The notes under the pieces were generated by a model. It was not told the DNA's origin. It did no database searches and worked only from the letters and a program-made list of their open reading frames with translations. Positions 17,143 to 46,431 of a stretch of 64,000 nucleotides of DNA are shown one piece after another. Source of the stretch: Selaginella moellendorffii (taxonomy: Eukaryota; Plantae; Lycopodiophyta). Numbering within the stretch: the stretch's first letter is position 1; each line of letters starts with the position of its first letter. The stretch covers positions 186,001-250,000 of the forward strand of contig NW_003314333.1 in the NCBI RefSeq assembly GCF_000143415.4, in the 5' to 3' direction. A program made the position numbers and the translations under genes.

Positions 17143-19089
17143 TTACACGGGGAGAATGTTAGATAGAAGCACGTAGGACGAGTCATGGAGCAATGGGTCC
17201 ATGCGAATAAGTTGCATAGCGGCTCTAGATCCCCGGCCCGCATCCTTGGATGTTTGACAGGAAGCCAGGAGGGTTTTCCACGCAACATTGTCGGGCGCAA
17301 ACGGCATGCCACGAATGACTTCTTCCGCCTCGGCTCCCACTCCTGCTCGTCCTAGGAGATCTATCAAGCATGCGTAATGCTCGGCAGTGGGTGCCAATCC
17401 AAAGTCATGCAACATAGACAAGAAGTAGTCGAGGCCGGTCGCAAGCAAGCCTGAGTGGCTGCAAGCGTGCAACATAACAGTGATGGTGATCCCATCCGGT
17501 TGTACATACGCCATTGTCATCACTCTGAAAAACTCCACGGCCGTGGCGCCGTGCCCGTGTTTTGCAAGAGCAGCGAGGATGGAGTTCCAGGCGGCCACAG
17601 CCAGCACCGAGTGCCGCTGCATCCTTTCAAACACCGTGGTGGCGTCATCCAAGCGCCCGCATTTGGCATACATGCACACGAGAGCAGTGCCGGACACGGG
17701 GTGGCCGTCGAGGCCGCGAGCAGCTACCTCGGTGTGCACGGCCCTCGACGTGGCCTCGTCCTTGAGCGCGCTGCACGCTGCTACAACCACAGCAAATGTA
17801 GCCGCATCCGGCATCACTCCCTCAGCTCTCATCCGCTGGTGAAGCCGGAGTGCTTCCTCCGCCTCCCCAGCCTCGACAGTGGCAGTGAGCATGGCGTTCC
17901 ATGACACCACGTCTTTGGGCGTCAGCTTGTTAAAGACTGCTGCGGCCTCCAGCAGGCAGCCGCATCGGGCGTACATGCACACCAGAGCTGTTCCAACCAC
18001 GGGGTTTTGGTCGTGGCCAGCAACTCGGATCCGTGTATGGACGCCCCTTCCCACTGCCAGGCCTCGGCCTCGATCCTCAAGCTGGCAGCACGCAGCACAG
18101 AGGGCAGACAGTGTCATTTCGTCCGGCTGCATGCCGTCCAAGTTCATGACCAGGAACATCTTCAGCGACTCGTCACCCCGCTCGTGCTGGGCATAGGCCG
18201 AGATGATCGATGTCCACGACACACGGCTCCTGTCTTGGATGTTGTCGAACACTCTCCTGGCCTCTTCTAGGCAGTGGCACCTTGAGTACATGCTGATGAG
18301 AGCGTTCTGGAGCACGGTTTGGGAGGCAAAGCCGGACGCAGCCGCTCGCGCGTGGACCGCCCGGCCTCTTAAGACGGTTTGAAGTCCCGGTCCCAGCTCG
18401 GACAAGGCACCGACGACCGCTACAAAGGTCACTGCGTTTGGCTGCACGCCTTCCAAGTTCATGCGGAGGTAGATGAGGCATGCCTCAACGTTGAAGCGGT
18501 TGTGGTGGTTAGCGAGAAGGATGGCATTCCACGAGATGAGGTTTCTCGCGGCCATGTTCTCAAACACCTGCCTTGCCACCTGAGTATTGCCCGACTTGGC
18601 ATACATGGTGACGAGGGCGTTTTGTAGCGGAATGTCGAGCTCATATCCACACGCAACGAGACGAGCATGGATGGCCTGGCCCTCTGCGCCTGCCCCTAGG
18701 CTGGAGCACGCGCTGAGCACGCATGACAAGGTGAACGCATCCATGTCTGCCTGGGCTCCCTCCAGGTCCATAGTGTGGAACAAGCAGAGTGCTTGCTCTT
18801 GTTTGCCGTGGTCGATATAGGCAGCCAGCATCACCGTCCACGACACACTGTTCCTTCGCTCTATGCTGTAGAAAGCCTTTCTTGCTCGGTGCAAATCTCC
18901 GCACTTGGCATACATTTGCACCAGCAAGTTCCCAATAGCGGTGTCTTTGTCTTTCTCTATTGCTATCAACCGGGCATGGATGCGTGCACCTCTTTCTAGC
19001 GCCCTTCCACTGATGCACTCCCGTAGGAGCGAAGTGTAAGCCTCACGGTTGTACACTTCTGGCACTTGGCCCCACAGGTCATGGTTCAT
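17143..19089 (-). CDS. PLS-class PPR protein, E domain, no DYW
   Basis: Repeated MYAKCG/VSWN motifs; ends HYACLIDLLGRAG...WKTLLASC...SYVLLSNI; intronless. Confidence 0.92.
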   Translation of the reverse strand: MNHDLWGQVPEVYNREAYTSLLRECISGRALERGARIHARLIAIEKDKDTAIGNLLVQMYAKCGDLHRARKAFYSIERRNSVSWTVMLAAYIDHGKQEQALCLFHTMDLEGAQADMDAFTLSCVLSACSSLGAGAEGQAIHARLVACGYELDIPLQNALVTMYAKSGNTQVARQVFENMAARNLISWNAILLANHHNRFNVEACLIYLRMNLEGVQPNAVTFVAVVGALSELGPGLQTVLRGRAVHARAAASGFASQTVLQNALISMYSRCHCLEEARRVFDNIQDRSRVSWTSIISAYAQHERGDESLKMFLVMNLDGMQPDEMTLSALCAACCQLEDRGRGLAVGRGVHTRIRVAGHDQNPVVGTALVCMYARCGCLLEAAAVFNKLTPKDVVSWNAMLTATVEAGEAEEALRLHQRMRAEGVMPDAATFAVVVAACSALKDEATSRAVHTEVAARGLDGHPVSGTALVCMYAKCGRLDDATTVFERMQRHSVLAVAAWNSILAALAKHGHGATAVEFFRVMTMAYVQPDGITITVMLHACSHSGLLATGLDYFLSMLHDFGLAPTAEHYACLIDLLGRAGVGAEAEEVIRGMPFAPDNVAWKTLLASCQTSKDAGRGSRAAMQLIRMDPLLHDSSYVLLSNILPV

Positions 19090-19111
19090 GAGCTCCTGTA
19101 GCTAAGATAGT

Positions 19112-21994
19112 ATGCCCAGTTGGGGCAAATGCTGGAATTCTTCTGTGAATGGCTATTTAGCGCTTACGGAGCACCGGATGTCTCTTCAAGAGAAGAGACA
19201 TGTGCCCCTTCACGTGCAGCTGAGGAACAAGGTATGTGACCTGATTGCATCGTTGAAGTCGTGTGGCAGGTCGCGAGATTTGGAGGGAGGGCGACGACTT
19301 CACCGGCAAGCAGCTGATTGCGGGCTGGAGCACAACATGTACGTTGCGAGCAGCCTGGTAGATATGTACGCCAAATGCGGTAGCATGGCAGACGCTCGCA
19401 GCGTCTTCGACGGGATGCCCCGGCCTCCTGACTTGGTGCTGTGGAATGCACTTCTGTGGGGATATGCTACCAATGGCGAGGGAGAGATGGTTTTGCTGCT
19501 TCTTAAGGTAATGCACGTAAAGCACCACTGCTGCCCCCTGCCAGATGCCCAAACCTTCACTGCGGGTCTCAAGGCGTGTGCCTCTCTGGCGAATCAAGAA
19601 GAGGACTCTCAGCTAGGGGCTGTGAAGATGGTGTCACTAGAAAAGGCGATGTTTATTTCCTCTCGAGCTTCCAGAATATGCAAGGACGATGACAGGCTCC
19701 TAGCCAACACACTCATCAGCGTCTATGGCAAGTGTGGGAGCCCAGTCGACTCCCACATGGTGTTTGATAGGTTGCTGCGGCCAGATGCTGTGTCATGGAC
19801 CGCGCTCATTCTCAGCTATGCTGACAACGGGGATGGCCAATCCGCCCTCACACTCTTCCAACACATGCAAACAGATCGGAGCTATCCACCACCAAACGGG
19901 CGCACCTTTGTTGCTGTGCTCAAATCGTGTGCCAATTGCCTGGCAGCAAACGAGGAGGTGACGTTAATCGATGGTAAGCTCGTCAAGCTTGCGGCTCTGG
20001 AGGTAGGCATGGCTGTTCATGCCCAGCTGCTGCTCGTCATAAGCTCCAAGCCCGACAGGTACGTGGTGAGCTCACTCATGGATATGTACGTCAAATGTGG
20101 GAGCTTTGCCGATGCCTGTCTAGTGTTTGACGCTGCCTGGTCTAGACGTAACGTTGATCTCGTGTCATGGACCGTGCTGGTGCTGGGCTATGCTGGTGAA
20201 GGCAAGGCAGAGGCAGCTCTCGAGTGTTTTGAGCTCATGACGCGATGTGCAGGCTGTGATTCCATGGCTTTTGCTGCTGCGTTGAGAGCTTGCGCCAATG
20301 TGGCAGCAGCAACCATCGAGCCAGCAGGCAAGTTACGGGGCCTAGAAAATGGGATGGCTCTCCATGCTCACGCAAGAGAGAGGGGCTGCGAGGAAGACAA
20401 GGTTGTAGCCAACGCTCTTGTGGATATGTATGCCAAGTGCTGGAGTATGGTCGATGCTCAAATGGTCTTTGACAGGATGCGGCAACCTGATCTCAACGCT
20501 TGGACTTCACTCATTTTGGGCTATGTTGACAATGGCATGGCTGACTTGGCGCTGGAATCGTTTGCGTCCATGACTGCCACCTTAGATGCGGGGCTTGCAA
20601 CTTATACAGCTGCATTCAAGGCTTGTAGCAGTTTGGCAGCGGCCAAAGTGAATTCGAGGGGTTGTCAGCGCCTAGCAATTCTGGAGAAAGGCATGGCGCT
20701 CCACGCTCATGCTGCCAGCCGCCACACCCTTGCTTATCACACAGTCGTCTCCAACAGCCTTGTCGACATGTACGCCAAGTGTGGCAGCGCTGACGATGCA
20801 AGCCGAGTGTTTTCCACAATGCTGCAACCGGACGTGGTGTCATGCAATGCACTCATGTCGGGAGCTGCAATGCCTCGGGTTGCTCTGCACTTCTTCGAGC
20901 TCATGCTACAGAAACAATTAGATGGCTGTCAGCCAGATGCGTGGACGTTTGCCGCTGCTTTCAAGGCGCTGGCACGTCTTGCGGAAGGAGAACAAGGGTC
21001 GGGCATCTCCGAAACAGGAAGGCCTGGCGGCAAACATGTGGTAGCAAAGCTGGTGTCTCTGGAGCGATGCATGGCCGTTCATGCGCAACTTACACAAACA
21101 AAACTATCGGACACGGTGGTTGCCAACGCCCTGCTGGATGTGTATGCCAAGTGTGGAAGCGTTGCAGACATGCGCCGTGTTTTCGACAGCATCAAATATC
21201 ACACCGACGTGTCTTGGAATTCGCTCATCCGCGGGTGTGCCGTGAATGGCGAGGCAGAGCTCGCCCTGGCGCTTTCACGACAAAGAGATAGTAAGGCGTC
21301 CGATAGTGGGATCCCCGCGGCAAGGGCGTGCGCGGCACCTCTTTCGGCTTGCTCAAGTGTGGGGGACTCGGTCGCAACAAAGGCCATACACGCTCGCTTG
21401 TGCAGGTACCATGATCATGGCCCTCTCGACGATGGCGGGATCCTTGTCACTTGCCTCGTCGATGCGTATGCAAAGTGCGGCCGCATTGCTGACGCACAGC
21501 ACGTTTTTGACTCGGCTGCCTCCGACAGCATTGACATTGCTGGATGGAATGCTTTGATCTCGGGATACAGCCGCTCAGGACATGTGAGCGCCGCGTCCGC
21601 ACTGTTTGATCTCCTGGAGGAGAGCGGGCGTCCTCACCCAGACAGCGTAACATTCATCTGCCTTCTCACTGCGTGCAGCCATGGTGGATGCGTGGACAGG
21701 GCAAGGCACTACTTGCGAGTGATGCGTGATAAGTACGGCGCCTGTGCTGGCATTGAGCATTACCACTGCGTGGTTGACATGCTTGGCCGGGTGAACCAGC
21801 TGGATGCTGCTGTGGAGGTGCTCGAGGCAATGCCCTTTCAGCCCAATGCGGTGACTTGGACGCTGCTGCTAGATGCATCCTCCAGATGGAAGTGTGCTGG
21901 AGTGGGCCGTGCTGCACTCACATCGCTAGTTTCATTGGGATTAGATTATGAGGCTAGCAGCTACGTGCTTTCGGCCAACGTAAACACAGGCTAG
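19112..21994 (+). CDS. PLS-class PPR-E protein with extended L motifs
   Basis: 960-aa intronless ORF; PLS triplets; HYHCVVDMLGR, WTLLLDAS, SYVLSAN; true start may be downstream. Confidence 0.92.
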   Translation: MPSWGKCWNSSVNGYLALTEHRMSLQEKRHVPLHVQLRNKVCDLIASLKSCGRSRDLEGGRRLHRQAADCGLEHNMYVASSLVDMYAKCGSMADARSVFDGMPRPPDLVLWNALLWGYATNGEGEMVLLLLKVMHVKHHCCPLPDAQTFTAGLKACASLANQEEDSQLGAVKMVSLEKAMFISSRASRICKDDDRLLANTLISVYGKCGSPVDSHMVFDRLLRPDAVSWTALILSYADNGDGQSALTLFQHMQTDRSYPPPNGRTFVAVLKSCANCLAANEEVTLIDGKLVKLAALEVGMAVHAQLLLVISSKPDRYVVSSLMDMYVKCGSFADACLVFDAAWSRRNVDLVSWTVLVLGYAGEGKAEAALECFELMTRCAGCDSMAFAAALRACANVAAATIEPAGKLRGLENGMALHAHARERGCEEDKVVANALVDMYAKCWSMVDAQMVFDRMRQPDLNAWTSLILGYVDNGMADLALESFASMTATLDAGLATYTAAFKACSSLAAAKVNSRGCQRLAILEKGMALHAHAASRHTLAYHTVVSNSLVDMYAKCGSADDASRVFSTMLQPDVVSCNALMSGAAMPRVALHFFELMLQKQLDGCQPDAWTFAAAFKALARLAEGEQGSGISETGRPGGKHVVAKLVSLERCMAVHAQLTQTKLSDTVVANALLDVYAKCGSVADMRRVFDSIKYHTDVSWNSLIRGCAVNGEAELALALSRQRDSKASDSGIPAARACAAPLSACSSVGDSVATKAIHARLCRYHDHGPLDDGGILVTCLVDAYAKCGRIADAQHVFDSAASDSIDIAGWNALISGYSRSGHVSAASALFDLLEESGRPHPDSVTFICLLTACSHGGCVDRARHYLRVMRDKYGACAGIEHYHCVVDMLGRVNQLDAAVEVLEAMPFQPNAVTWTLLLDASSRWKCAGVGRAALTSLVSLGLDYEASSYVLSANVNTG

Positions 21995-22040
21995 CGACTG
22001 CAGGTGTCGCCGCAAATGCCCACACAGGTCATCTGCTTCA

Positions 22041-24185
22041 ATGCCAGGGATCTGGACTTCCCTACATAGAAATGGATATCGATGCCGCACCTCCAACGTG
22101 GAGCAGCTGGTGGCGCCAGTGTGGAGCCTAATTGCCGCGTTAAAATCCGCGTGCAGCACAAAGAACCTCGAGTTTGGGAAGCGAGTCCATGCCACAAGTG
22201 AGGGGACGCAGCTCTTCGCCTCCAACATCTACGCCGCCAACACCCTTGTCAGCATGTATGCCAAGTGCAGCAGTGACATGGCCGATGCGCAAGCGGCGTT
22301 TGATGCCATAGCCGAGCAGGAGCGCGACGTTATCTCATGGACCGCACTCGTGCTGGGATATGCATCCAAAGGCATGGGCCGTGTGGCCTTGGACCTCTTC
22401 CAACGCATGCAGCTGGAAGGCGGCTGCGAACCCGATGCCCGGAGCTACACTGCGGCTTTGATGGCAGTGACCAGCCTAGCACGCGACGACGTTACTTGCA
22501 AAAGGTTGTGGCTCGACATCGGCAGAGACCTTCACGTCCAGTCCGTTACCAGCGGATCATGTGGCTCGGACGTGTTTGTGGCGAGTGCCCTTGTGGACAT
22601 GTATGCAAAGTGTGGGAGCATGACGGATGCCCGAGCTGTGTTTGACGCAATGCCGCACCACGATCGCGACGTTGTCACCTGGACGGCCTTGATCCTGGGA
22701 TATGTGGACAACGGGCAGCCTGCTCAAGCTCTACACGCATTTGCTCAGATGCATGATCCGAGTGCTCTGACTTTCGTGGCGGCGCTCAAGGCCTGTGGCA
22801 GCCTGGGGGACCTCCACCGCGGGATGCTTATTCACTCTCAAGTTGCCAAGACTGGTTTGGATTCCAAGGACACGTTTGTCGGGGGCAGCTTGGTTGACAT
22901 GTACGTTAAATGCGGCAGCCTTGCAGATGCGTGGGAAACATTCCACAAGATGCAGCGCCGCGATGTCGTGTGCTGGACGAGCATCATCCTGGGCTATGCA
23001 GAAACTGGAGATTACAAGGTCGCATTCAGCCTGTTTGCATGGATGCAGCTCGAGGGTTGTCAACCGGACGCCCGATGCTTTGTCGCTGCGCTGACGGCAT
23101 GCTCTAGACTGGCAGCCGTGGAGGAAGCACAACCAGCCTGCGTGGTCTCGGATGGCAAGCATGGCTATCTTGGAGATGGTGGTCTAAAGCCTTCAACTCT
23201 GAAGTTGAAGGCTTTAGAGAGAGGGATGGGGCTCCACTCCCAAGCCTGGCAATGCGGCCACGACGGAGATATGTTCGTTGCAAACGCGCTTGTGGATCTC
23301 TACTCCAACTGCGGAAGCCTTTTAGATGCTCGCGGGACGTTCGACAGGATGTTCCACCGTGACGTGGTGTCGTGGAATGCCTTGCTCCTGGGATGCGCGG
23401 AGAATGGACAGGAGCTATTGGCTCTGGATCTGTTTGCGTGTATGAGGCACGAAGGTTGCAAGCCGGATGCTCGAACACACGTAGCTCTTCTCGTAGCATG
23501 CGGCAATGCAGCTATCAGCTATGGGAGGGAAATACACGCAGAGACATGCCGGAGTGGCCTCGAGGTCGAGGCATTCGTTGCAAGCTGCTTGGTCGGGTTC
23601 TATGGTAAATGTGGGAGCATCGGCAATGCCGTGCGTGTGTTTGAGACGCTAGACAGTGTGAGCCTGGTTACATGGAACGCGCTCATGGCTGCTTGCAGCT
23701 GCAACTGTGGCTCTAAGCTCGAGCAACAAGTCACAGTGTTCACCCTGTTTGAAAGGATGCAAGCTCAGGGTGTAAAGCCAGACGGTGTCACTTTCCTGTG
23801 TGTGCTCACCGCGTGCAACCATGAAGGTCTAGTAGACAGAGGCATGGCCTGCTTCGAGTCCATGTCCTCTAAGCACGGCCTCGGCCCAGCCATTCAGCAC
23901 TACCACTGCATGATTGACATGCTTGGGCGAATGAACCAGCTGCATGCCGCCTTGGACTTGGCTAAGACGATGCCTGTAGAGAAAACATTGGTGACCTGGA
24001 CCATACTGCTGGATGCATGCAAGAAGTGGAAGAACTTGGCAGTGGCACAAGAGGCATTTGAGTCACTACTCAAGCTTCCTGGCGGGAACTTGCAAGCGTC
24101 CGCATACGTTGTCATGGCAGGATTGTATGGAAGCCTGGGCATGTGGCAGGAGCAGTCTAAAGTGCTAGCCATGGCTGTCAAGTGA
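22041..24185 (+). CDS. PLS-class PPR-E protein
   Basis: 714-aa ORF; PLS triplets; ends AYVVMAGLYGSLGMW. Confidence 0.92.
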   Translation: MPGIWTSLHRNGYRCRTSNVEQLVAPVWSLIAALKSACSTKNLEFGKRVHATSEGTQLFASNIYAANTLVSMYAKCSSDMADAQAAFDAIAEQERDVISWTALVLGYASKGMGRVALDLFQRMQLEGGCEPDARSYTAALMAVTSLARDDVTCKRLWLDIGRDLHVQSVTSGSCGSDVFVASALVDMYAKCGSMTDARAVFDAMPHHDRDVVTWTALILGYVDNGQPAQALHAFAQMHDPSALTFVAALKACGSLGDLHRGMLIHSQVAKTGLDSKDTFVGGSLVDMYVKCGSLADAWETFHKMQRRDVVCWTSIILGYAETGDYKVAFSLFAWMQLEGCQPDARCFVAALTACSRLAAVEEAQPACVVSDGKHGYLGDGGLKPSTLKLKALERGMGLHSQAWQCGHDGDMFVANALVDLYSNCGSLLDARGTFDRMFHRDVVSWNALLLGCAENGQELLALDLFACMRHEGCKPDARTHVALLVACGNAAISYGREIHAETCRSGLEVEAFVASCLVGFYGKCGSIGNAVRVFETLDSVSLVTWNALMAACSCNCGSKLEQQVTVFTLFERMQAQGVKPDGVTFLCVLTACNHEGLVDRGMACFESMSSKHGLGPAIQHYHCMIDMLGRMNQLHAALDLAKTMPVEKTLVTWTILLDACKKWKNLAVAQEAFESLLKLPGGNLQASAYVVMAGLYGSLGMWQEQSKVLAMAVK

Positions 24186-26222
24186 CGATCGAATTCCATC
24201 ACAATGAGTATGCGCAGTAGCATTGTCACCTCCGCCTCCCTTGCTCATCCCCAGGGAGAACATGTCCGACTTCTCCTTCCACATGCCCACACTGCCGTAG
24301 ATGTTGCCCATGAGAACGTAAGCGGCATCCTCCGAGTCGTCCAGCTTCATCACACAGTCGAACGCCAGCCTTCCCAGCGCAACCTCCTTCCACTTGTGAC
24401 AGGCGGACAAGACGGTCATCCACGTCACGAGCTTCGGCTTGAACGGCATTGCCTTGACCATTGCCACCGCCTCGTGAAGCCGGTTAGCCCGGCCCAGCAT
24501 GTCGATGGCGACGTGGTAGTGATGAACGTCGGGGTCAACCCCATACTCGGCCGGCATGCTGCGGAAGCATTTCATCCCCTTATCTACGAGGCCTGCGCGG
24601 CTGCATGACGTGAGAAGTGCCGTGAGAGACATCTTGTCTGGCTCGACTTTCTCGAACACCATTTGATGAAAGAGATCGAACACTTGAGCCGTGGCTCCCT
24701 GGCAGCTGTAGCCCGATAGCATGGAGCTCCATGACACCACGTCCTTTCTCACCATCCAAGCGAAGACGAGCTCGGCAGCAGTTAGGCTGCCACACCGGCT
24801 GTAGCAGTCCACGAGGCAGTTTGCCACAATGGTGTTGCTCTCCACTCCTTGCCTGCAGATAACGGCGTGAATCCTCTTGGCGGCATCCAGTGCAACGATG
24901 TTACCGCAGGCAACCAACGCCGCCACAAACGTCTGGGGCCGTGGACTGTAGCCTTGCTGCTCCATGCACACGAACATGTGAAGAGCACCCTCGGCTTCTC
25001 CATTCTCGGCATAGCCAAGCATCATGGCAGTCCAAGTAACAGCATCTCGCGCTTGAGTGCTGTCAAACACCTTCTTGGCATCAAGCAGGCTCCCACACTT
25101 GGAATACATGTCGATGAGCGTGTTTGCCACAAACGGGACTGAGTCACAGCCACTTGTTCTCGACTGAGAGTGGACGTCCATACCCCTCTCCAGGCATCGT
25201 AACTTCACAAGCCTTCCATCGACCAGCCGCCCTTCTTCCTTGGTTGCAAGGCTAGCACAAGCCATGAGAGCTGCGACGTAAAGGCGAGAGTTGGGAGCAA
25301 AGTCCTGTTGATCTTGCATGACACTGAAAAGCATAAGTGCTGTTTCGGGCTCCCCATTCTCGACATATCCCAGAGTCAAGACTGTCCACGACACAATGCT
25401 ATGGCACGGAATCCTGTCAAAAACAGCGTGGGCTTGAGGCATGCTCCCACACTTTGACAAGAGGTCCATGAGCGTGTTGGCCACGAACACGTCCAAGCAC
25501 CCGTTAGTTGACGCTTGCCAGAATATAGCCATGCCTCTGTCCATGCACCTCTTTCTGTTGTCAACTCTCTTGCCTTCCTCCTTGGCAACCAAGCTCGCAC
25601 AGGCCACGAGAGCAGCAAGATAGGTGCGCCGGTCCGGCAGGCAGCCCTCGTCCGCCATGCGCGAGAAGAGTTCCAAGGCTTCCCCGCCTCGTCCAATCTC
25701 CGTATACGCCAGGATAAGTGTTGTCCACGACACGGCATCCCGGCGCTGCAACTTGTCAAACTCGGCACGAGCCTCCACCAGGTTTCCACACTTGGCATAC
25801 ATATTCACGAGCGAGTTTGAAGCGTAGCTGTCCTCTCCATCGCCCGTCAGGTGTCCCTTTTCAAGAGCATCAGCCTGGATCCTCTTGCCAGTCCCGAGTT
25901 CCTTGAGAGTGCCACACGCCTTGAATGCAGCTAGGACCGTCTGCCTGACTTGGTAGCAATGCTCCTGTGCAGCTTGCTTTCCTCCGAGCACCAGCGGGCC
26001 GTCATCTCCAGTCATGGGTTGCCTCCAACTCCATGTGTGGATCCGCGTCCACAAAGCCCTTGGCGGCCTGCATCCCTGCTGTGGAGCCAAGTGTGGGCAC
26101 CGAGGCATACACCGCTCCTTCGCCCCCAACAAATAGAAACTTGAGCAAAATATCAGACCCCAAGAGCGGCAGCCGAGGTTCTCCGCCTCATGGCCACCAA
26201 CACCTCGAACTGCTCTTGCCAC
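24165..26222 (-). CDS. PLS-class PPR-E protein (true start probably ~26108 or ~26015)
   Basis: PLS triplets; HYHVAIDMLGRANRL; AAYVLMGNIYGSVGMW. Confidence 0.9.
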   Translation of the reverse strand: MARAVRGVGGHEAENLGCRSWGLIFCSSFYLLGAKERCMPRCPHLAPQQGCRPPRALWTRIHTWSWRQPMTGDDGPLVLGGKQAAQEHCYQVRQTVLAAFKACGTLKELGTGKRIQADALEKGHLTGDGEDSYASNSLVNMYAKCGNLVEARAEFDKLQRRDAVSWTTLILAYTEIGRGGEALELFSRMADEGCLPDRRTYLAALVACASLVAKEEGKRVDNRKRCMDRGMAIFWQASTNGCLDVFVANTLMDLLSKCGSMPQAHAVFDRIPCHSIVSWTVLTLGYVENGEPETALMLFSVMQDQQDFAPNSRLYVAALMACASLATKEEGRLVDGRLVKLRCLERGMDVHSQSRTSGCDSVPFVANTLIDMYSKCGSLLDAKKVFDSTQARDAVTWTAMMLGYAENGEAEGALHMFVCMEQQGYSPRPQTFVAALVACGNIVALDAAKRIHAVICRQGVESNTIVANCLVDCYSRCGSLTAAELVFAWMVRKDVVSWSSMLSGYSCQGATAQVFDLFHQMVFEKVEPDKMSLTALLTSCSRAGLVDKGMKCFRSMPAEYGVDPDVHHYHVAIDMLGRANRLHEAVAMVKAMPFKPKLVTWMTVLSACHKWKEVALGRLAFDCVMKLDDSEDAAYVLMGNIYGSVGMWKEKSDMFSLGMSKGGGGDNATAHTHCDGIRSSLDSHG

Positions 26223-28597
26223 ATCCCAAGGCTGCCGTAGATGTTGGCCATCAGAGTGTAAGTGGCAGCATCGCTATCATCCAGCCTCAAGGACGCCTCA
26301 AACGCGAGCTTCCCCAGCGGCATGTTGTTCCACTTGCGGCACGCACCCAGCACGGTTGTCCATGTCACAAGTGTGGCTTCAAACGGCATGCTGGCAACCA
26401 TGGCAACCGCGTCGTCGAGCCGGTTGGCACGTCCAAGCATGTCTACCATGCAGTGATAGTGCCTGATCTCCGGCTGGATGCCGTATTGAGCATGCATTGT
26501 GGCAAACAATCGCTCGCCATCGTCGACCAATCCTCCATGGTTGCAAGCGTTGAGAAGAGAGATAAACGTCACAGCATTGGGTTGCACGGCTTCGTTCTTC
26601 ATGTCCTCAAAGAGTCGAAACGCCTGCTCGGTTCCTCCTTGGCAACTATAGCCCCCGATGAGTGCGCTCCATATCAGGACGTCCCTTGTTGTTTCCACAC
26701 CCGACGCATCAAACACGAGCTGCGCGTCCAGCAGCCTCCCACATTTGCCGTAAAAGTCCACCAGCCGATGCACCACGAAAGCATTGCCCCTGTCCAGCTC
26801 CTCGCGACAAATAAGAGCGTGAATCTGTCTTCCGGCATCCAGCGCCACCAGGTTCCCGCAAGCCATGAGTCCGGCAACGTAACTCCTTGCATCGGGCGCA
26901 CAGCTCGAACTCATCCTGGACAAGGTCTCGAGTGCCACCTCGTCTTCACCGTTCTCTACGTACCCCAGTAGGAGCGCATTCCAGGACACAAGGCTCCGGC
27001 CCTGCTTCATCGCATCAAACACTGCTCGAGCATCGGCCACACTCCCGCATTTGCAGTACATGTCGATGAGCGTGTTCGAAACAAAGACGTCCGACTCACA
27101 CCCGCTCTCGGCTGCCTGCGAATGAATCCGTGCCCCGGTTTCCAGGCTCTGGGCCTTGACAAGCCTACCGCTGCCAACTTCTCGTTGCCATTCCTCCTTG
27201 TCTGCCAAGGCCGCACAGGCTTTCAGAGCGGCGACGTAAGTCTCGGCACCATGGCCTTGCATGCGCTGATACAGCTCCAAGGCGAGGCCACACTCCCCGT
27301 TGTCCGTGTAACCCAGCATCAGCGCAGTCGACGCTACCACGTCGTGGCTCGGCATGCGCTGGAAGACTCGACAGGCCTCCACAAGGCACCCGCACTTTGC
27401 ATACATGAACACAAGCGTGCTTGCGACATAGACGTCAAACTCGTAGCCACTCGACCTTGCTTGTGCATGGACAGCCCGTCCCTTGCTCAGGCCCTCGTCT
27501 CGTGACGAGTGTTCCGCCACGCTGCAACAGGCCGTGAGAGCCGCAACAAAAGTCCGAGAAGTGGGAGCACAGCCGATGCGAGCAAAGAGGTCAAGAGCAG
27601 CGTCACCGTGCCCATTGTCTGCGTAGCCGGAGATCATCACGTTCCACGACACAACATCGCGGCGCACCATCCTATCGAACACGTTGCGGGCATTGACAAG
27701 GCTCCCGCACCTCGAGAAGACGTCGATCAGAGTGTTGGCCACGAAGGTGTCCGACTCGGCCCCAATCTCCACAGCTCCGGCATGAAGAGCGCAGCATTTG
27801 TCGAGGGACGCCACCTTAACGAGCTGGCCATCCATGAGCCGCCCCACCTCCTTGTCTGCCGAGGCCGCGCAAGCCACAAGCGCGGCCACGAAGGTCCGCG
27901 AGCTTGGTTGGCAGCCCCCCTGCGATGTCATGCTCGCAAACAGCTCCAAGCCCATGTCACCCTGCCCGTTCTCCGCAAAGCCGAGTATGAGGCAAGTCCA
28001 CGACACGAGATCGTGGAGCGCCATCCGGTCGAAGACCGCCCGAGCATCGAGCAGGCTGCCACACTTGGCGTACATGTCGATGAGAGCGCTGCCCACGAAC
28101 AGATCATTCTCCACCAGCTGCCCAGCCTGGGAGTGCAGAGACATTCCCCAGTCGAGGGCATCGAGCTTGGATTTGGTGGCGGCACTGGCAACACAGGCCC
28201 GGAGCGCGGCAAGGAACGTTGGAGCGGTGGGCGGGCAGCCGGAGGACGCCATGCAGTCGAGGAGGTGGCGGGCAGCGGCCGCATCGGCAGTGGCGGCGTA
28301 TCCCAGAATGAGGCTGTTCCACGACGCCTGATCGTGGCAAGGAATGCGCCAGAACGCGGCGCTCGCATCCCTGGTATGCCCACACTTGGCATACATCTCG
28401 ACGACGGCATTGTGCGCGTAGATGCTCCAGCCGCCCCTTTGCTCCGCGCCGCGGTGAATGCTTCGCCCCGCCTCTACCTCGCCTGTCGTGCCACACGCCT
28501 TGAGCGCCGCGATCACGCCCGCCCATCTCACCCCCTCTGCCGCCTCCCGGGCGGTCTGCTGCCTATACGAGAAGAAGCACCCGATCGAGCGGCGCAT
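26153..28597 (-). CDS. PLS-class PPR-E protein
   Basis: 814-aa ORF; PLS triplets; HYHCMVDMLGRANRL; ATYTLMANIYGSLGMW. Confidence 0.92.
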   Translation of the reverse strand: MRRSIGCFFSYRQQTAREAAEGVRWAGVIAALKACGTTGEVEAGRSIHRGAEQRGGWSIYAHNAVVEMYAKCGHTRDASAAFWRIPCHDQASWNSLILGYAATADAAAARHLLDCMASSGCPPTAPTFLAALRACVASAATKSKLDALDWGMSLHSQAGQLVENDLFVGSALIDMYAKCGSLLDARAVFDRMALHDLVSWTCLILGFAENGQGDMGLELFASMTSQGGCQPSSRTFVAALVACAASADKEVGRLMDGQLVKVASLDKCCALHAGAVEIGAESDTFVANTLIDVFSRCGSLVNARNVFDRMVRRDVVSWNVMISGYADNGHGDAALDLFARIGCAPTSRTFVAALTACCSVAEHSSRDEGLSKGRAVHAQARSSGYEFDVYVASTLVFMYAKCGCLVEACRVFQRMPSHDVVASTALMLGYTDNGECGLALELYQRMQGHGAETYVAALKACAALADKEEWQREVGSGRLVKAQSLETGARIHSQAAESGCESDVFVSNTLIDMYCKCGSVADARAVFDAMKQGRSLVSWNALLLGYVENGEDEVALETLSRMSSSCAPDARSYVAGLMACGNLVALDAGRQIHALICREELDRGNAFVVHRLVDFYGKCGRLLDAQLVFDASGVETTRDVLIWSALIGGYSCQGGTEQAFRLFEDMKNEAVQPNAVTFISLLNACNHGGLVDDGERLFATMHAQYGIQPEIRHYHCMVDMLGRANRLDDAVAMVASMPFEATLVTWTTVLGACRKWNNMPLGKLAFEASLRLDDSDAATYTLMANIYGSLGMWQEQFEVLVAMRRRTSAAALGV

Positions 28598-28909: not shown

Positions 28910-30994
28910 ATGGCCGGACAAGGTGAGTTCCAGGAGCTGGTGGAGACTCTCATTGGGCTGCTCAACGAGATATCATCCCTGGGGGACTACGCCAGATCGC
29001 ACCGCAAGGAATGCACCAATCTCGCCCGCCGACTCAAGCTCTTGGCCCCGCTGCTGGAGGAGGCGAGGGAGGCCAGCTCGCTTGATTCCCTTCGCCCCTT
29101 CCACGACCTCAAGCTCGTTCTCCACTCGGCCAAGGACCTCCTCTCTCTCTGCCACAAGGGAAGCAAAATTTTCCTGGTAAGCCGCAAAGTTCTCCTTTGA
29201 CTTGCCTGAACTGCGGATGGAAATCTAGATCATGAAAAGAGAAGGAATTGCCAGCAGCTTCCAATCCGTGACCGCGGATTTGGAGCATGTGCTAGATTCC
29301 CTGCCATACAATTCACTGAATCTCTCGGAAGAGGTCCGAGAACAGGTATGTCGACCAAAACCTGTCTTCCTTGGTGAGCTTTCGATGATGATTGTGATCC
29401 ATGCGCAGGTGGAGCTGCTCCATGCGCAGCTCAAGAGGGCCAAAGGCAAAGCAGAAGTTATCGACACGGAGCTGATCGAGGACTTGATGCGATGCAGCAC
29501 GAGTGACGAACGAGACTATGATAGAATGGCAGCGGAGAGACTAGCCGACAAGCTACACCTCAAAACCTGGTCCGAGATAAAGGAGGAGGAGTTTCGTGCG
29601 CAGGAGAGCCTGAAGCTGGACAAAGGTGGTGACCTTGACGCTGCAATCAAGATGGTGCTGGGAAGGCTCAAGGGCATTGCCATCTCGGACGCGGACGAAC
29701 CTTATGTTTCAATCGACAAAGCACGAGTTGACTTCGCTATGAGAAATCCCTTGTCACCGTCACCGCGATCAGACAAGCTGAGCAACCCAGCCATTCCAGA
29801 GGATTTCCGGTGCCCAATCTCGCTGGAACTGATGAAAGACCCCGTCATCGTTGCAACTGGCCAGGTTACGTGCTCTCATCGTGAATTCTTTTATTAATTG
29901 TCGTGATTCCGCAGACTTACGAGCGCTCCTACATCCAAAAGTGGCTAGATGCCGGCCACAAGACATGCCCGATAACGCAGCAGACGCTCCCGCATCTGGT
30001 GCTGACTCCAAACTATGTTCTCCGGAGTCTCATCTGTCAGTGGTGCGAAACCAACGGGATCGAACTGCCAAAGAAAGTTGGCACGAGTCGGGGTGGTCAC
30101 TCGTCCGACTTGGAAGCATGTGGAGACAGGGTGGCCGTAGAGGCGCTACTGCAGAAGCTTTCCAGCCCCCAAGTGGATGTGCAAAGGATAGCTGTGGCGG
30201 ACCTCAGGCTGCTGGCAAAGAGAAGCATCGACAACAGGATTTGCATTGCAGAAGCTGGAGGTGTTCCGCTGCTGATTGGACTCTTGTCATCGACGGACAC
30301 GCGGATACAAGAGCATGCAGTTACCGCTCTGCTCAATCTCTCCATCCACGACCCCAACAAGGCTCAGATCGTCCAGGCAGGTGCTATAAATCCGATTGTC
30401 GAGGTTCTCAAGTCAGGCAGCATGGAGGCAAGAGAGAATGCCGCTGCTACGCTCTTCAGCCTCTCGGTTGTGGACGATAACAAGGTGACGATTGGCCAGA
30501 CGGCTGCGATTCCAGCTCTAGTGAACTTGCTCAGAGAAGGCACTCCCCGAGGCAAAAAGGACGCAGCCACTGCCCTTTTCAACTTGTCCATATACCAAGG
30601 CAACAAGGCCAAGGCAGTGAGAGCTGGCGTGGTTCCGCCGCTGATGGAGCTGCTGGATCCAAACGCAGGCATGGTGGATGAAGCTTTGGCTATTCTGGCA
30701 ATACTCGCAACGCACCAGGAGGGGCGCGTTGCAATCGGCCAGGAGTCAACCATCCCACTTTTGGTGGAGCTCATACGTTCCGGCTCGGCCAGGAACAAGG
30801 AGAATGCAGCTGCTGTTCTCCTTGCTCTGGGCCAGAACGACGCAGCTCATCTTGTCACAGCGCAACAGTACGACGCCGGGGTGCCTTTGGCGGAGCTCGT
30901 GCAAAACGGCACCAGCAGGGCCAGGCGCAAAGCGAGCTTGATCCTGGAGCTGATGCACAAGCAACAGCAAGAACAGTTAAACAAGCAACAATAA
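28910..30994 (+). CDS. U-box/ARM-repeat E3 ubiquitin ligase, PUB13-like (UND-U-box-ARM, about 4 exons)
   Basis: UND ([15 protein letters not shown]); U-box [28 protein letters not shown]...CP; ARM repeats ([37 protein letters not shown]). Confidence 0.95.
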
Positions 30995-43672: not shown

Positions 43673-46431
43673 TCAAGAAACAGAGTGACTGCGATGGTGC
43701 TGGCAAGGACGCCTTTGGCCACTGGATAGATTGTTGTTTGGAGTGGCGGGCCTCGTACCGGATCTTGCAGGAAGAGCTTCAAACTCATTAGTACTACTTG
43801 TGAATGTGGAGCGGTGCTGTTCCTCTTCGTCCACGTCGGTGGAGGTGGTGGTGGTATTGCTAACGTCATAGCACGCATTGTATTTGCCCCTCCACAAGCT
43901 CCCCAGCCCGAGCTTTTTAAAAGTCTTGAGCAGCCTGTGACCAAAGTTGATGCCGGCCCGTTGGCTGTGCAACATTTGGCCTATACAGTTTGTCGAGTAG
44001 GAGGCCTTCTTGTGAGCATTGGGGCCGCTTGCGTTTAAGTGCTCCATGCCCGGGCATTTGTTCTGTTGCAGCGTCTTCTTCACCTGCGCAAGCTCCTTCT
44101 CGAGGTGCTTGAGTCGCGACTTGGCTGCTTCAAAGTCACGGTTGACATACAAGGCCCTGGTGTTGTGCTGAGAATCCACGACGTAAGGGAAGTCGGACGA
44201 AGGGCACTTGCTACTATCATCGGGCTGCGCCTGGGTGGAGCCGCTGAACTGCTCGCGGTGGAACCGATGGCTGGATGATCTCTTCGGAGCTGCCTCGGCC
44301 GCGATCCTGCCGTTTGTGTTGGTGGTGGCTACGGAGGATGAGACACGGATGTCTTTGCAAGGCTCGGGACTAGAACAAGCAACAGACGTGTCGTGGCTGG
44401 GAAGCTCTCCGCTGGGGGGCACTGGCGGTGCTGGCGACGAGTGATGGCGGCTCTGAAGCTGCTCCATGAACATAGCTTGCACGATAGTCCTCAGGGGCAT
44501 GAGCTCGTTTTGCACGGCGTGAATGCACGCCTCTTGGGACAGCTTCTGGCAATTGAGGCTCCTACACACGAGCAGTCGCTCCGAGTGTGTTACATGGGGA
44601 TGGGACTGCGCAAAAGCGTTCGCAGTGATGATCATATTGATAGACATGACTTACCTTCAAGTAGACATGGATCGCCTTGTAGAGCTGGTCGTGGCTTGTC
44701 CGAGCACAAGCCGGGAAGACGTCAATGAGGTCAGACAAGGTGACAGGGTTGATCCCTGGATCATATCCCAGATACTCCAAATAACCATCCCAGATCTTGG
44801 AAACGGTATTCACTGCTTCAATGTTGGTGAAGAAAAGCAGTGTTTCGTCCCTGCTGCTGCTAAACACATGACTTCCACCACCACCTTGCTTACGATCATC
44901 TTGTTGTTGCTGCTGCTGCTGCTGCAAAAAGAGCGAACCAATCTGGCGGGCACTCTCCAGCTGAGCCTTTGACGTCCGACCATCCTTGAGTGGCAGCCCC
45001 AGTAGCAAATCGTCCACGCTCGCAAGCTCCAGCTGACAGGCAATCCGGGTCTCTATCTGGAGCCGGCATTCCGTGCTAGCGCCGACTCCCAGTGCATGCC
45101 GCAGAAGCCGGAAGAGGAAGCTCACCGGGAGCAGCTGCTGCTTCTCCACGGGCAGCAAGCGTACCATGGACTCTAGCAGCCGGCACTTGTCGCTCCTTTG
45201 CTCCAGCTTCTCCAGCCTCTGGCTGCCGCACCACAAGTAGTAGTCCCTGTTCTTGTGCTGCTGGTCCGCGTCGCCACGACCAAATATCCACCTCTCCACG
45301 CACTTGATCATGAGCTGCCCGATGACGCGCTCCGCCATCCCTTGCCTCCGGGTGGCAGCGACGATCCTCGCAAACAAGGCATATGGGAGCTCCACCAGCT
45401 GTTGCATCCACCACTCCGGAGCTGCAATGGATTCTTGGTCGTCCACCAGCTGGGTGCAAGCGATGGAGGCGAGTGAATCGACACAGCGGGTGACAATGAG
45501 GAGCTCGTCGGCGAGCGGGAGGAGGCGTTGGATGTCGGCGGCAAGAACACCGATGCTGCCCTCCCAGCTCTGGAGCGCCACTTTGGTGAGGTACATGTCG
45601 CACAGCTCCGCCAGGCTGCCCCGACCCATCTCCGCGCTCATCTCCAGGTACTCGGCAGCGCAGCGCAGCATGGCCACATTGCTCGGCTCCACCACGATGT
45701 GAGCGCCGTAGCAAAACGCCGCCGCCCACCCAAATGCCTCGGCGCCGCCAGGAAAGTCGCCACCCAGCTCCACCTCTACCACCTCTCCGCTCGCTTTCTT
45801 CGACTGGAGCACTCGCCGCAGAAGCCCACTCCTTGACACCAGCGGCAGCTGTAACGGATGGCCATTCGATCAGTATCTCGGTTTTCCAAAGCTTTGGAAC
45901 TGTACCTCGTGGAGCTCAAAGGTCGCGCCTTGGACATGAACTCTCACCCTCGCTACCGCTCCGGTGGCCTCACACCTACATACCATCCAAAGCAATGAAT
46001 CCAATGAATCCAATAAATCAGACCCACCATGCCAAGACGCTCTGCTGGAGGAGGAGTCTGGGCGAGGAGGAGGCAGAGGATGGTGAAGAACAGGATGTCG
46101 ACGACGAGGACCATGTCGATGCCACATTGACATTGCCGTGATCATGCATCACTACCATGCCCACATCCTTGCTCTCCCGATCAAGCTCCTTCTCTTGGCG
46201 GGACGGATATCCCACAGCAGATGATCGATCATCTGCTGCTACCCCAGGGCTGGACAGCATCTCTGGCTCCACCGGCTCGTCTTCAAACGACTCGAAGATG
46301 GTCTCCATCCTCGCGGGCCTTGCGAACTCCTCGATCGCCGCACATAAATCTTCCTCTTCCAGTTGCATCAGCTCCTCCTGTGCCTGTGGATCACAGGAGG
46401 AAGAGGGGGACAGTAGCACACCTCTGGCCAT
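43673..46431 (-). CDS. BTB/POZ-NPH3 domain (NRL family) protein
   Basis: BTB (PLVSRSG, DFPGGAEAF...AAFCYG, NVAMLRCAAEYLEM); NPH3 domain (HDQLYKAIHVYLK, CQKLSQEACIHAVQNELMPLR); coiled coil; ends HRSHSVS. Confidence 0.93.

Follow-up and report, generated by a model that had tools for sequence, protein, structure and literature searches.

Genes A–D and their class

The stretch of Selaginella moellendorffii DNA considered here, hereafter the window, comprises 64,000 nucleotides (nt) of contig NW_003314333.1 (positions 186,001 to 250,000; assembly GCF_000143415.4), and all coordinates below are counted from its first letter. Between positions 19112 and 28597 it holds a cluster of four genes, A–D, encoding pentatricopeptide repeat (PPR) proteins of the PLS class, in which internal L1 motifs are enlarged by an insert at the turn between their two helices. 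The genes are the following.

19112–21994, plus strand: gene A, intronless PLS-class PPR open reading frame (ORF), 960 amino acids (aa), five extended L1 motifs, short E2 tail, no DYW domain
22041–24185, plus strand: gene B, PLS-class PPR ORF, 714 aa, two extended and two canonical L1 motifs, ending in E2
24165–26108, minus strand: gene C, PLS-class PPR, 647 aa from the ATG at 26108, two extended L1 motifs and a canonical last L1
26153–28597, minus strand: gene D, PLS-class PPR, 814 aa, four extended L1 motifs and a canonical last L1

Motifs of the type 'WNALIxGY...' were named P1, those of the type 'TFVAALKAC...' L1 and those of the type 'xFVxNxLVDMYAKCG...' S1. Read in this way, each of the four proteins has the architecture (P1-L1-S1)n followed by P2-L2-S2-E1-E2, with the stop codon falling within E2. 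Membership of the PPR superfamily is supported by Pfam matches to PF13041, PF01535 and PF12854, which lie far over the cut-offs in all four proteins, and by a match to TIGR00756. The motif parse and a colinear alignment to the synthetic PPR-DYW protein 9kfx through L2 and S2 place them in the PLS class; the same alignment covers E1 and enters E2, reaching chain residue 462, as expected of the E subgroup. The Pfam E_motif model scores slightly under its cut-off (26.5 and 25.3 bits against 27.3), and the E2 motif of gene A is truncated. PF14432, the model of the C-terminal DYW cytidine-deaminase domain with its HxE and CxxCH motifs, gave no match in A–D. The AlphaFold2 model of gene C is an all-helical solenoid, and its best matches in the Protein Data Bank (PDB) are PPR proteins.

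Extended L1 motifs

Each L1 motif in the window was measured from a point two residues ahead of 'TFVAALKAC', where L1 starts, up to the beginning of the next S1, a ruler on which canonical L1 motifs measure 36–38 aa. By this measure 13 internal L1 motifs of A–D are 43–69 aa long, that is, they carry from 6 to 32 additional residues, and these are always situated at the turn between helix A and helix B. None of the 13 has the canonical form of 35–36 aa with a short turn, which is found in the last L1 of B, C and D. The last L1 of gene A was not picked up by the ruler; by eye it has no loop insert. The motifs are distributed as follows.

19547–19699, plus strand: gene A, extended L1, 51 aa, degenerate insert
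19898–20062, plus strand: gene A, extended L1, 55 aa, consensus type (...EEVTLIDGKLVKLAALEVGMAVH)
20261–20404, plus strand: gene A, extended L1, 48 aa
20594–20746, plus strand: gene A, extended L1, 51 aa
20939–21118, plus strand: gene A, extended L1, 60 aa, long loop rich in Gly and Ser
22437–22577, plus strand: gene B, extended L1, 47 aa
22764–22877, plus strand: gene B, canonical internal L1, given as the 'normal' example in the first-pass annotation of this DNA
23070–23276, plus strand: gene B, extended L1, 69 aa, the longest, with a Gly-rich loop followed by LKLKALERGMGLH
23469–23576, plus strand: gene B, canonical last L1 before P2-L2-S2
25485–25631, minus strand: gene C, extended L1, 49 aa, degenerate
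25131–25289, minus strand: gene C, extended L1, 53 aa, consensus type
25203–25238, minus strand: gene C, loop and beta-hairpin (EEG-RLV-DG-RLV-K) predicted by AlphaFold2 within the preceding motif
24828–24938, minus strand: gene C, canonical last L1
28097–28225, minus strand: gene D, extended L1, 43 aa, short insert
27743–27901, minus strand: gene D, extended L1, 53 aa, consensus type (...KEVGRLMDGQLVKVASLDK...)
27428–27559, minus strand: gene D, extended L1, 44 aa
27083–27247, minus strand: gene D, extended L1, 55 aa, consensus-like (...KEEWQREVGSGRLVKAQSLETG...)
26777–26890, minus strand: gene D, canonical last L1

The first-pass annotation, made from the letters alone, had reported extra residues at the helix turn of many L motifs in these four genes, and every string that it quoted is present in ORFs A–D. 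Its estimate of some 7–30 extra residues stands as to their presence and position, the measured range being the slightly wider one given above. Four window copies, at 19898–20062, 25131–25289, 27743–27901 and 27083–27247, are close in both consensus and length to the extended L1 subfamily of about 51 aa that is defined below.

Translation of the insert

All 13 inserts are in frame and free of stop codons across 197 extra codons. Were there no constraint, the chance that every length would be a multiple of three is about 6e-7, and the chance of meeting no stop is about 7e-4. The amino-acid sequence of the insert is conserved across hundreds of copies, the insert is retained in ORFs of the Pteridium and Nothoceros transcriptome assemblies, and the consensus-type copies contain no in-frame GT..AG pair of matching size. 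On the scaffold of the other haplotype, GL377630.1, the allele of gene D is 99% identical to the window (scaffold GL377637.1, GCA_000143415.2), and the NCBI model of this allele, P0001, is a named PPR protein of the same length that keeps the whole ORF, with no intron modelled. We conclude from the frame and stop statistics, the conservation, the transcriptome ORFs, the alleles and the NCBI model of gene D, and the lack of splice-site pairs in the consensus-type copies that the insert is translated.

Between the haplotypes gene D differs at 17 synonymous and 9 non-synonymous codons, giving a ratio of non-synonymous to synonymous rates (dN/dS) of about 0.18 by a rough site count; gene D is under purifying selection. 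The gene C allele of the other haplotype (L002:4490-6433) shares its ATG start with gene C of the window. Contigs of four S. moellendorffii sequencing runs, probably of DNA, are colinear with the genome and have no short GT..AG joints, and look-ups of the exact proteins matched the two genome scaffolds only and no transcript contigs.

A family-wide motif class

The wider family was sampled as 305 homologues from three word-index searches, in which the distance from the L1 start to the core of the next S1 was recorded; on this scale a canonical L1 gives 39–40. The S. moellendorffii paralogs have a sharp second length mode at 55, corresponding to 16 additional residues. Exactly this increment is found in 70 of the 234–239 S. 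moellendorffii L motifs, and 139 of 234 fall in the class of 50–58. At least one extended L1 is present in 62 of the 64 sampled S. moellendorffii proteins, and in these 62 the extended form accounts for most of the internal L1 motifs.

From 70–72 S. moellendorffii copies the consensus of the +16 class is TFVAALKAC.sLAAKEeG..VDGKLVKv.SLEkG.aIHSqA.k.G.dsD, and the subfamily may be recognised by 16 additional residues with the signature (A/E)KEE-x3-VDG-x3-K-V-x-SL ahead of helix B, in internal triplets only. The best-conserved columns of the insert, Glu16 (3.4 bits), Gly23 (2.8), Val26 (2.3) and Lys27 (3.5), lie within the range of the core columns; several other insert positions vary freely, and the net charge differs among lineages. 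The recurring consensus proposed in the first-pass annotation, A.KEEG...DG.LVK...LE(K/R)GM..H, agrees with this family-wide one, and the length mode and the consensus across paralogs bear out its proposal of a distinct, conserved class of L motif with an insert between the helices. The copies in the window are degenerate members of a sharply defined L1 variant of about 51 aa (35 + 16).

The extended motif obeys a strict rule of position. S2 could be anchored in 24 of the S. moellendorffii carriers; the L1 adjoining P2-L2-S2 is canonical in all of these (24/24), while the L1 motifs at successive positions upstream of it are extended in 23/24, 22/22, 17/19 and 9/9. The earlier remark that the last L motif before the C-terminal block lacks the insert thus holds for B, C and D and for every scorable paralog. 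Extended and canonical L1 motifs occupy the same place in the P1-L1-S1 triplet, share helix A (TFvsvLKAC) and helix B (LexGkxIH...G.esD), and are equally conserved at the 5th and last residues; the extended form differs in having about 16 more residues at the turn, and it is confined to internal triplets and never found as the last L1.

Isolated L motifs, extended or canonical, gave no Pfam match even at an E-value of 10, so that Pfam neither covers nor excludes the motif. In papers of 2025–2026 the L motif is still given as 35–36 aa (PMC12548569, PMC13324415, PMC13041630), the canonical form for which the first two cite Lurin 2004 and Cheng 2016. A full-text literature search of partial coverage found no description of the extended L motif, and a prior description is possible.

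Predicted structure of the extended motif

Gene C was modelled with AlphaFold2 from S1 to E2 with an alignment of 71 rows, giving a predicted local distance difference test score (pLDDT) of 96.5 and a predicted template-modelling score (pTM) of 0.90. In this model the canonical last L1 consists of a 13-residue helix, a 3-residue turn and a second 13-residue helix. For the consensus-type extended L1 the model gives a 17-residue helix A (SRLYVAALMACASLATK), a loop EEG, a strand RLV, a turn DG, a second strand RLV, a lysine, and a 16-residue helix B (LRCLERGMDVHSQSRT). The hairpin strands are residues 203–205 and 208–210 of the model, with local pLDDT values of 93–98. The degenerate extended L1 of the same protein (25485–25631), which is four residues shorter, has two long helices and a loop with pLDDT of about 79, and no hairpin. 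An independent model of the Adiantum protein P0212 (pLDDT 90.1) has the hairpin in two of its three extended L1 motifs, the third, which is without the DG turn, being a disordered loop. The insert is thus predicted to lengthen helix A by about four residues and helix B by about three, and to join the two by a two-stranded hairpin of the form xLV-DG-xLV. The protruding hairpin anticipated in the first-pass annotation accordingly appears with high confidence in both the Selaginella and the Adiantum predictions.

The best Foldseek matches are 9kfx_A, the synthetic PPR-DYW protein with RNA, and 5iww_D, from the designer PLS9-PPR with MORF9 (E-values of 1e-31, with a template-modelling (TM) score of 0.72, and 1e-15 for 9kfx and 5iww, respectively); phmmer aligns gene C to 9kfx with an E-value of 4e-122. 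The P2-L2-S2-E1-E2 region is colinear with these structures. Their L1 motifs, however, are of 35 aa, the extended L1 forces a gap of exactly 16 residues in the alignment, and the window proteins are without a deaminase domain.

Two other departures from the standard repeat invite comparison. The S-type (SS) arrays of Selaginella (PMC8809517) are likewise a motif-level peculiarity of editing-factor-like PPR proteins and abundant in Selaginella, but they change the order of motifs, being 31-aa repeats with no L, whereas the cluster keeps the P-L-S order and enlarges L. The 'L' repeat of THA8 (PDB 4leu; PMC13041630) resembles the extended L1 in being a PPR repeat with an elongated helix A; it differs in that its helix B is shortened, it has no hairpin, and it is not a true L motif of the PLS class (PMC13041630).

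Distribution and descent

The motif is not confined to Selaginella, and the view of it as lineage-specific, taken in the first-pass annotation, has to be abandoned: the same motif of about 51 aa, in the same architecture, is found in ferns, a hornwort and Diphasiastrum. The +16 form accounts for 46/159 L motifs in Adiantum capillus-veneris and A. nelumboides and for 18/54 in Ceratopteris richardii, and it is present in transcriptome ORFs of Pteridium aquilinum (EukProt EP00250), in protein P0282 of the hornwort Nothoceros aenigmaticus (EukProt EP00246), and, out of 35 proteins of Diphasiastrum complanatum, in a single one, the full-length PPR-DYW protein P0118. None of the 101 gymnosperm L motifs sampled has it, and it is absent from 10 L motifs of the liverwort Calypogeia and from one Sphagnum cluster. 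Adiantum P0212, Nothoceros P0282 and Diphasiastrum P0118 have in common the arrangement (Lext)n - canonical L1 - P2-L2-S2-E1-E2(-DYW). The consensus of the insert is LAEKEe.....G...K..aLeIGqALHADA in ferns and LAEkEe.v.VDGq..Kv.SLqkGKAiHA in the hornwort-associated clade. The searches also returned P0166, from the amoeba Balamuthia mandrillaris, a PLS-like PPR protein of 1077 aa that matches a lycophyte PLS query with an E-value of 3e-254 and in which the three scorable L motifs are canonical.

A tree was calculated with FastTree from the C-terminal 200 residues, thereby excluding the insert, and is unrooted. A branch with support of 92–93 divides the tree into two parts: one holds 162 of the 163 carriers (those of Selaginella, the ferns and the hornwort, and P0118), with A–D inside the Selaginella carrier clade, and the other holds canonical proteins of Diphasiastrum, gymnosperms and a liverwort. 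Over the tree as a whole the insert trait changes state 13 times, with a few insert-less fern clades nested among the carriers. Because the carriers are gathered on one side of a supported branch and share architecture and consensus, the sequence comparisons favour one old origin, before the divergence of hornworts and vascular plants or at least before that of lycophytes and ferns, with losses thereafter. By the same comparisons the insert defines an old subfamily, (P1-Lext-S1)n - P1-L1-S1 - P2-L2-S2-E1-E2(-DYW), in hornworts, lycophytes and ferns.

As to how the insert arose, the phmmer alignment of gene C to 9kfx pairs SLATKEEGRLVDGRLVK with the canonical SLSSLKEGKQIHGHVIK and gaps the next 16 residues exactly, and in a second phmmer alignment those 16 residues, CLERGMDVHSQSRTSG, are themselves paired with SLEMGKQIHGYVIKSG. 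Either half of the extended loop therefore aligns to the canonical 'LxxGKQIHxxxIK'. When a matrix built from positions 14–29 of the canonical L1 motifs of non-carrier taxa was scored along extended motifs, two peaks were obtained, 16 residues apart. For the second copy the score lies beyond the 99th percentile of the null in every Selaginella motif (100%). The first copy lies about 2.9 standard deviations over the null in Selaginella, with 51% of motifs past the 99th percentile and both sub-blocks at z of 2.3–2.5. A tandem duplication of 16 codons spanning the loop and the start of helix B is the most economical origin, for which the alignments are suggestive without being proof. The first duplicate would have been remodelled into the hairpin, while the second would serve as helix B.

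Role of the hairpin and alternative explanations

Overall, we favour, with a probability of roughly 0.6, an account in which A–D form a tandem cluster of DYW-less, E-type PPR proteins with hairpin-extended internal L1 motifs, the hairpin serving as a structural brace or surface. By class membership only, the carriers are most likely site-recognition factors for organellar C-to-U editing, and those without a DYW domain would need a deaminase supplied in trans. The conserved positions are the Glu at the end of helix A, the Gly of the turn, hydrophobic strand residues (Val) and the Lys, the remaining positions are free and the charge varies; for this reason we read the insert as a self-contained structural element rather than as a ligand surface or an RNA clamp. 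A strongly basic clamp on the RNA backbone finds no support in the composition of the insert, the Selaginella consensus being roughly neutral and that of ferns acidic.

The orientation of helix B of the L motif decides whether its 5th and last residues are able to read a base, and MORF9 acts by rotating this helix (PMC13041630); a consensus protein in which L1 is already in the binding conformation needs no MORF (PMC13324415). Mainly a structural brace, as we infer, the hairpin could, by tying together the lengthened helices directly before helix B, fix the geometry of helices A and B of L1 in cis. The hairpins would also form a regular ridge, with a protrusion at each third repeat save the one adjoining the C-terminal block, and hence a possible contact surface. 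Steric or functional constraints close to E1/E2 and the deaminase may explain why the last L1 is exempt.

Several observations weigh against this account. Nine of the 13 window copies are degenerate, having drifted in length and sequence (43–69 aa overall). Between haplotypes gene C differs at 23 non-synonymous and 12 synonymous codons (dN/dS of about 0.64, a rough estimate), and because of these allele differences and the variable insert lengths part of the cluster may be under relaxed constraint. Contigs of S. moellendorffii reads (24 runs, taken for RNA only by guess) span the genes and the spacers at even depth, with allele bubbles, and are probably of DNA. The taxon sample is biased, since the searches were seeded with motif carriers, and the tree rests on FastTree and 200 columns. 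Finally, Selaginella gives no more than a moderate duplication signal, and in ferns, where the first copy has diverged, the signal is weak (z of about 0.8).

The best of the competing explanations, which we nevertheless consider unlikely, holds that the inserts are neutral expansions of an indel-tolerant loop at a permissive turn, carried along by a rapidly duplicating family and having no function of their own. The scatter of lengths in the window, the Gly/Ser-rich character of some inserts, the modelling of degenerate copies as lower-confidence loops, the dN/dS of gene C and the nesting among carriers of some fern proteins with canonical L1 motifs only are what it would lead one to expect. 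It does not readily account for a sharp length mode at exactly +16, for insert columns reaching 2.8–3.5 bits, for a consensus common to Selaginella, ferns and the hornwort-associated clade, or for a rule of position without exception in 24 carriers; nor would it explain a hairpin predicted with high confidence in two distant lineages.

A bolder reading, which we regard as doubtful, would make the hairpin L1 an ancestral land-plant means of setting the L conformation or of bringing in editing partners in cis. Hornworts, lycophytes and ferns would have retained it, and the seed-plant line would have lost it at about the time that MORF cofactors arose; hairpin and MORF would then be alternative answers to one structural problem.

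The first-pass annotation had gone further, suggesting that the hairpin is a built-in substitute for MORF/RIP proteins that holds L1 competent for RNA binding in plants that lack them, a proposal that we judge improbable. Only seed plants have MORF genes (PMC13386178, PMC8809517), and here the motif was encountered in non-seed plants only; moreover, in the model the insert immediately precedes and lengthens helix B, the element that MORF9 re-orients (PMC13041630). Against this, 34 of the 35 Diphasiastrum proteins and the liverwort and Sphagnum matches have canonical L1 motifs and no MORF, mosses have editing factors with ordinary L motifs that reportedly function in the absence of plant cofactors (PMC8809517), and a consensus PPR-DYW protein with a 35-aa L1 binds RNA without MORF9 (PMC13324415). 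The last L1, in addition, is never extended in the carriers scored. As nearly all the Diphasiastrum proteins and the liverwort and moss matches make do with canonical L1 motifs, and moss factors are reported to edit without plant cofactors, the hairpin is not a general requirement where MORF is absent. The idea of MORF replacement is thus weakened; the complementary distribution is worth testing but is not evidence for it.

Less probable again is that the hairpins form a docking ridge for a partner, such as a trans-acting DYW deaminase or an adaptor for the DYW-less members. Salviniales ferns are reported to have many more PLS proteins than DYW-bearing ones, and deaminase domains acting in trans have been proposed, with no known recognition signature (PMC12548569). 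Most of the carriers sampled are indeed DYW-less (56/62 in Selaginella and 31/31 in the named ferns, Adiantum and Ceratopteris). The queries, however, biased the sample towards DYW-less proteins and the insert-less fern proteins are equally DYW-less (28/28), and no link between the insert and the absence of DYW can be claimed. Full-length DYW carriers also exist, namely Diphasiastrum P0118 and six Selaginella paralogs, and several positions of the hairpin are poorly conserved.

S. moellendorffii introns can be very short, and some copies contain a few in-frame GT..AG pairs of about the right size, but that the inserts are unannotated introns or assembly artefacts, missing from the mature protein, we reject as next to impossible given the intact frame of all 13, the amino-acid conservation, the transcriptome-derived ORFs of Pteridium and Nothoceros, the agreement of both haplotype scaffolds, the consensus-type copies with no splice-site candidate and the colinear, joint-free contigs of the four runs, even if the last are possibly DNA.

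Organisation and surroundings of the cluster

With gene E, which adjoins the cluster, five intronless PPR ORFs (E, A, B, C and D) lie within positions 17143–28597.

17143–19089, minus strand: gene E, PLS/E-type PPR, intronless

On the C-terminal tree the nearest relatives of B, C and D are one another, and by this measure the three are local duplicates, whereas A, though within the Selaginella carrier clade, is more remotely related to them. Gene E lies outside the extended-L clade and groups with canonical PLS proteins; two of its L1 motifs have a small enlargement of four residues only (41 aa on the same ruler).

The genes are packed extremely closely. E and A are divergent, with 22 nt between their start codons (19089–19112), the spacer between A and B is 46 nt (21994–22041), B and C, which lie on opposite strands, share 21 nt at their 3' ends (24165–24185), and 44 nt separate the stop of D from the ATG of C (26108–26153). 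The annotation of the other haplotype also includes, at L002:2763-6445, a 763-aa product spanning D and C, which is probably a read-through or mis-spliced model. Gene C may be drifting towards loss of function.

Elsewhere in the window, a 930-aa PPR ORF at 51654–54446 (minus strand) is made up almost entirely of tandem 31-aa S-type repeats (DLVSWNAMLxAYAQxG...) and ends in L2-S2-E1-E2, an S-type array architecture reported to be typical of Selaginella (PMC8809517). A gene for a plant U-box/ARM-repeat protein at 29903–30994 (plus strand) and an NPH3-family protein split across two ORFs at 43673–45839 (minus strand) appear unrelated to the PPR cluster.

Implications for the PLS family

RNA editing in plant organelles owes its specificity to PPR proteins of the PLS class, on which designer RNA editors are also based, and the L motif is the least understood of their repeats and the one through which MORF cofactors act in seed plants. 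If the account given here is true, the standard models of 35–36 aa may mis-parse a large share of the PPR proteins in the hyper-editing hornworts, lycophytes and ferns. The 51-aa L1 would then be a natural experiment in the relation of L-motif geometry to RNA binding without cofactors and a phylogenetic marker of an old subfamily of editing factors, and it may provide synthetic PLS proteins with an L module that is independent of cofactors.

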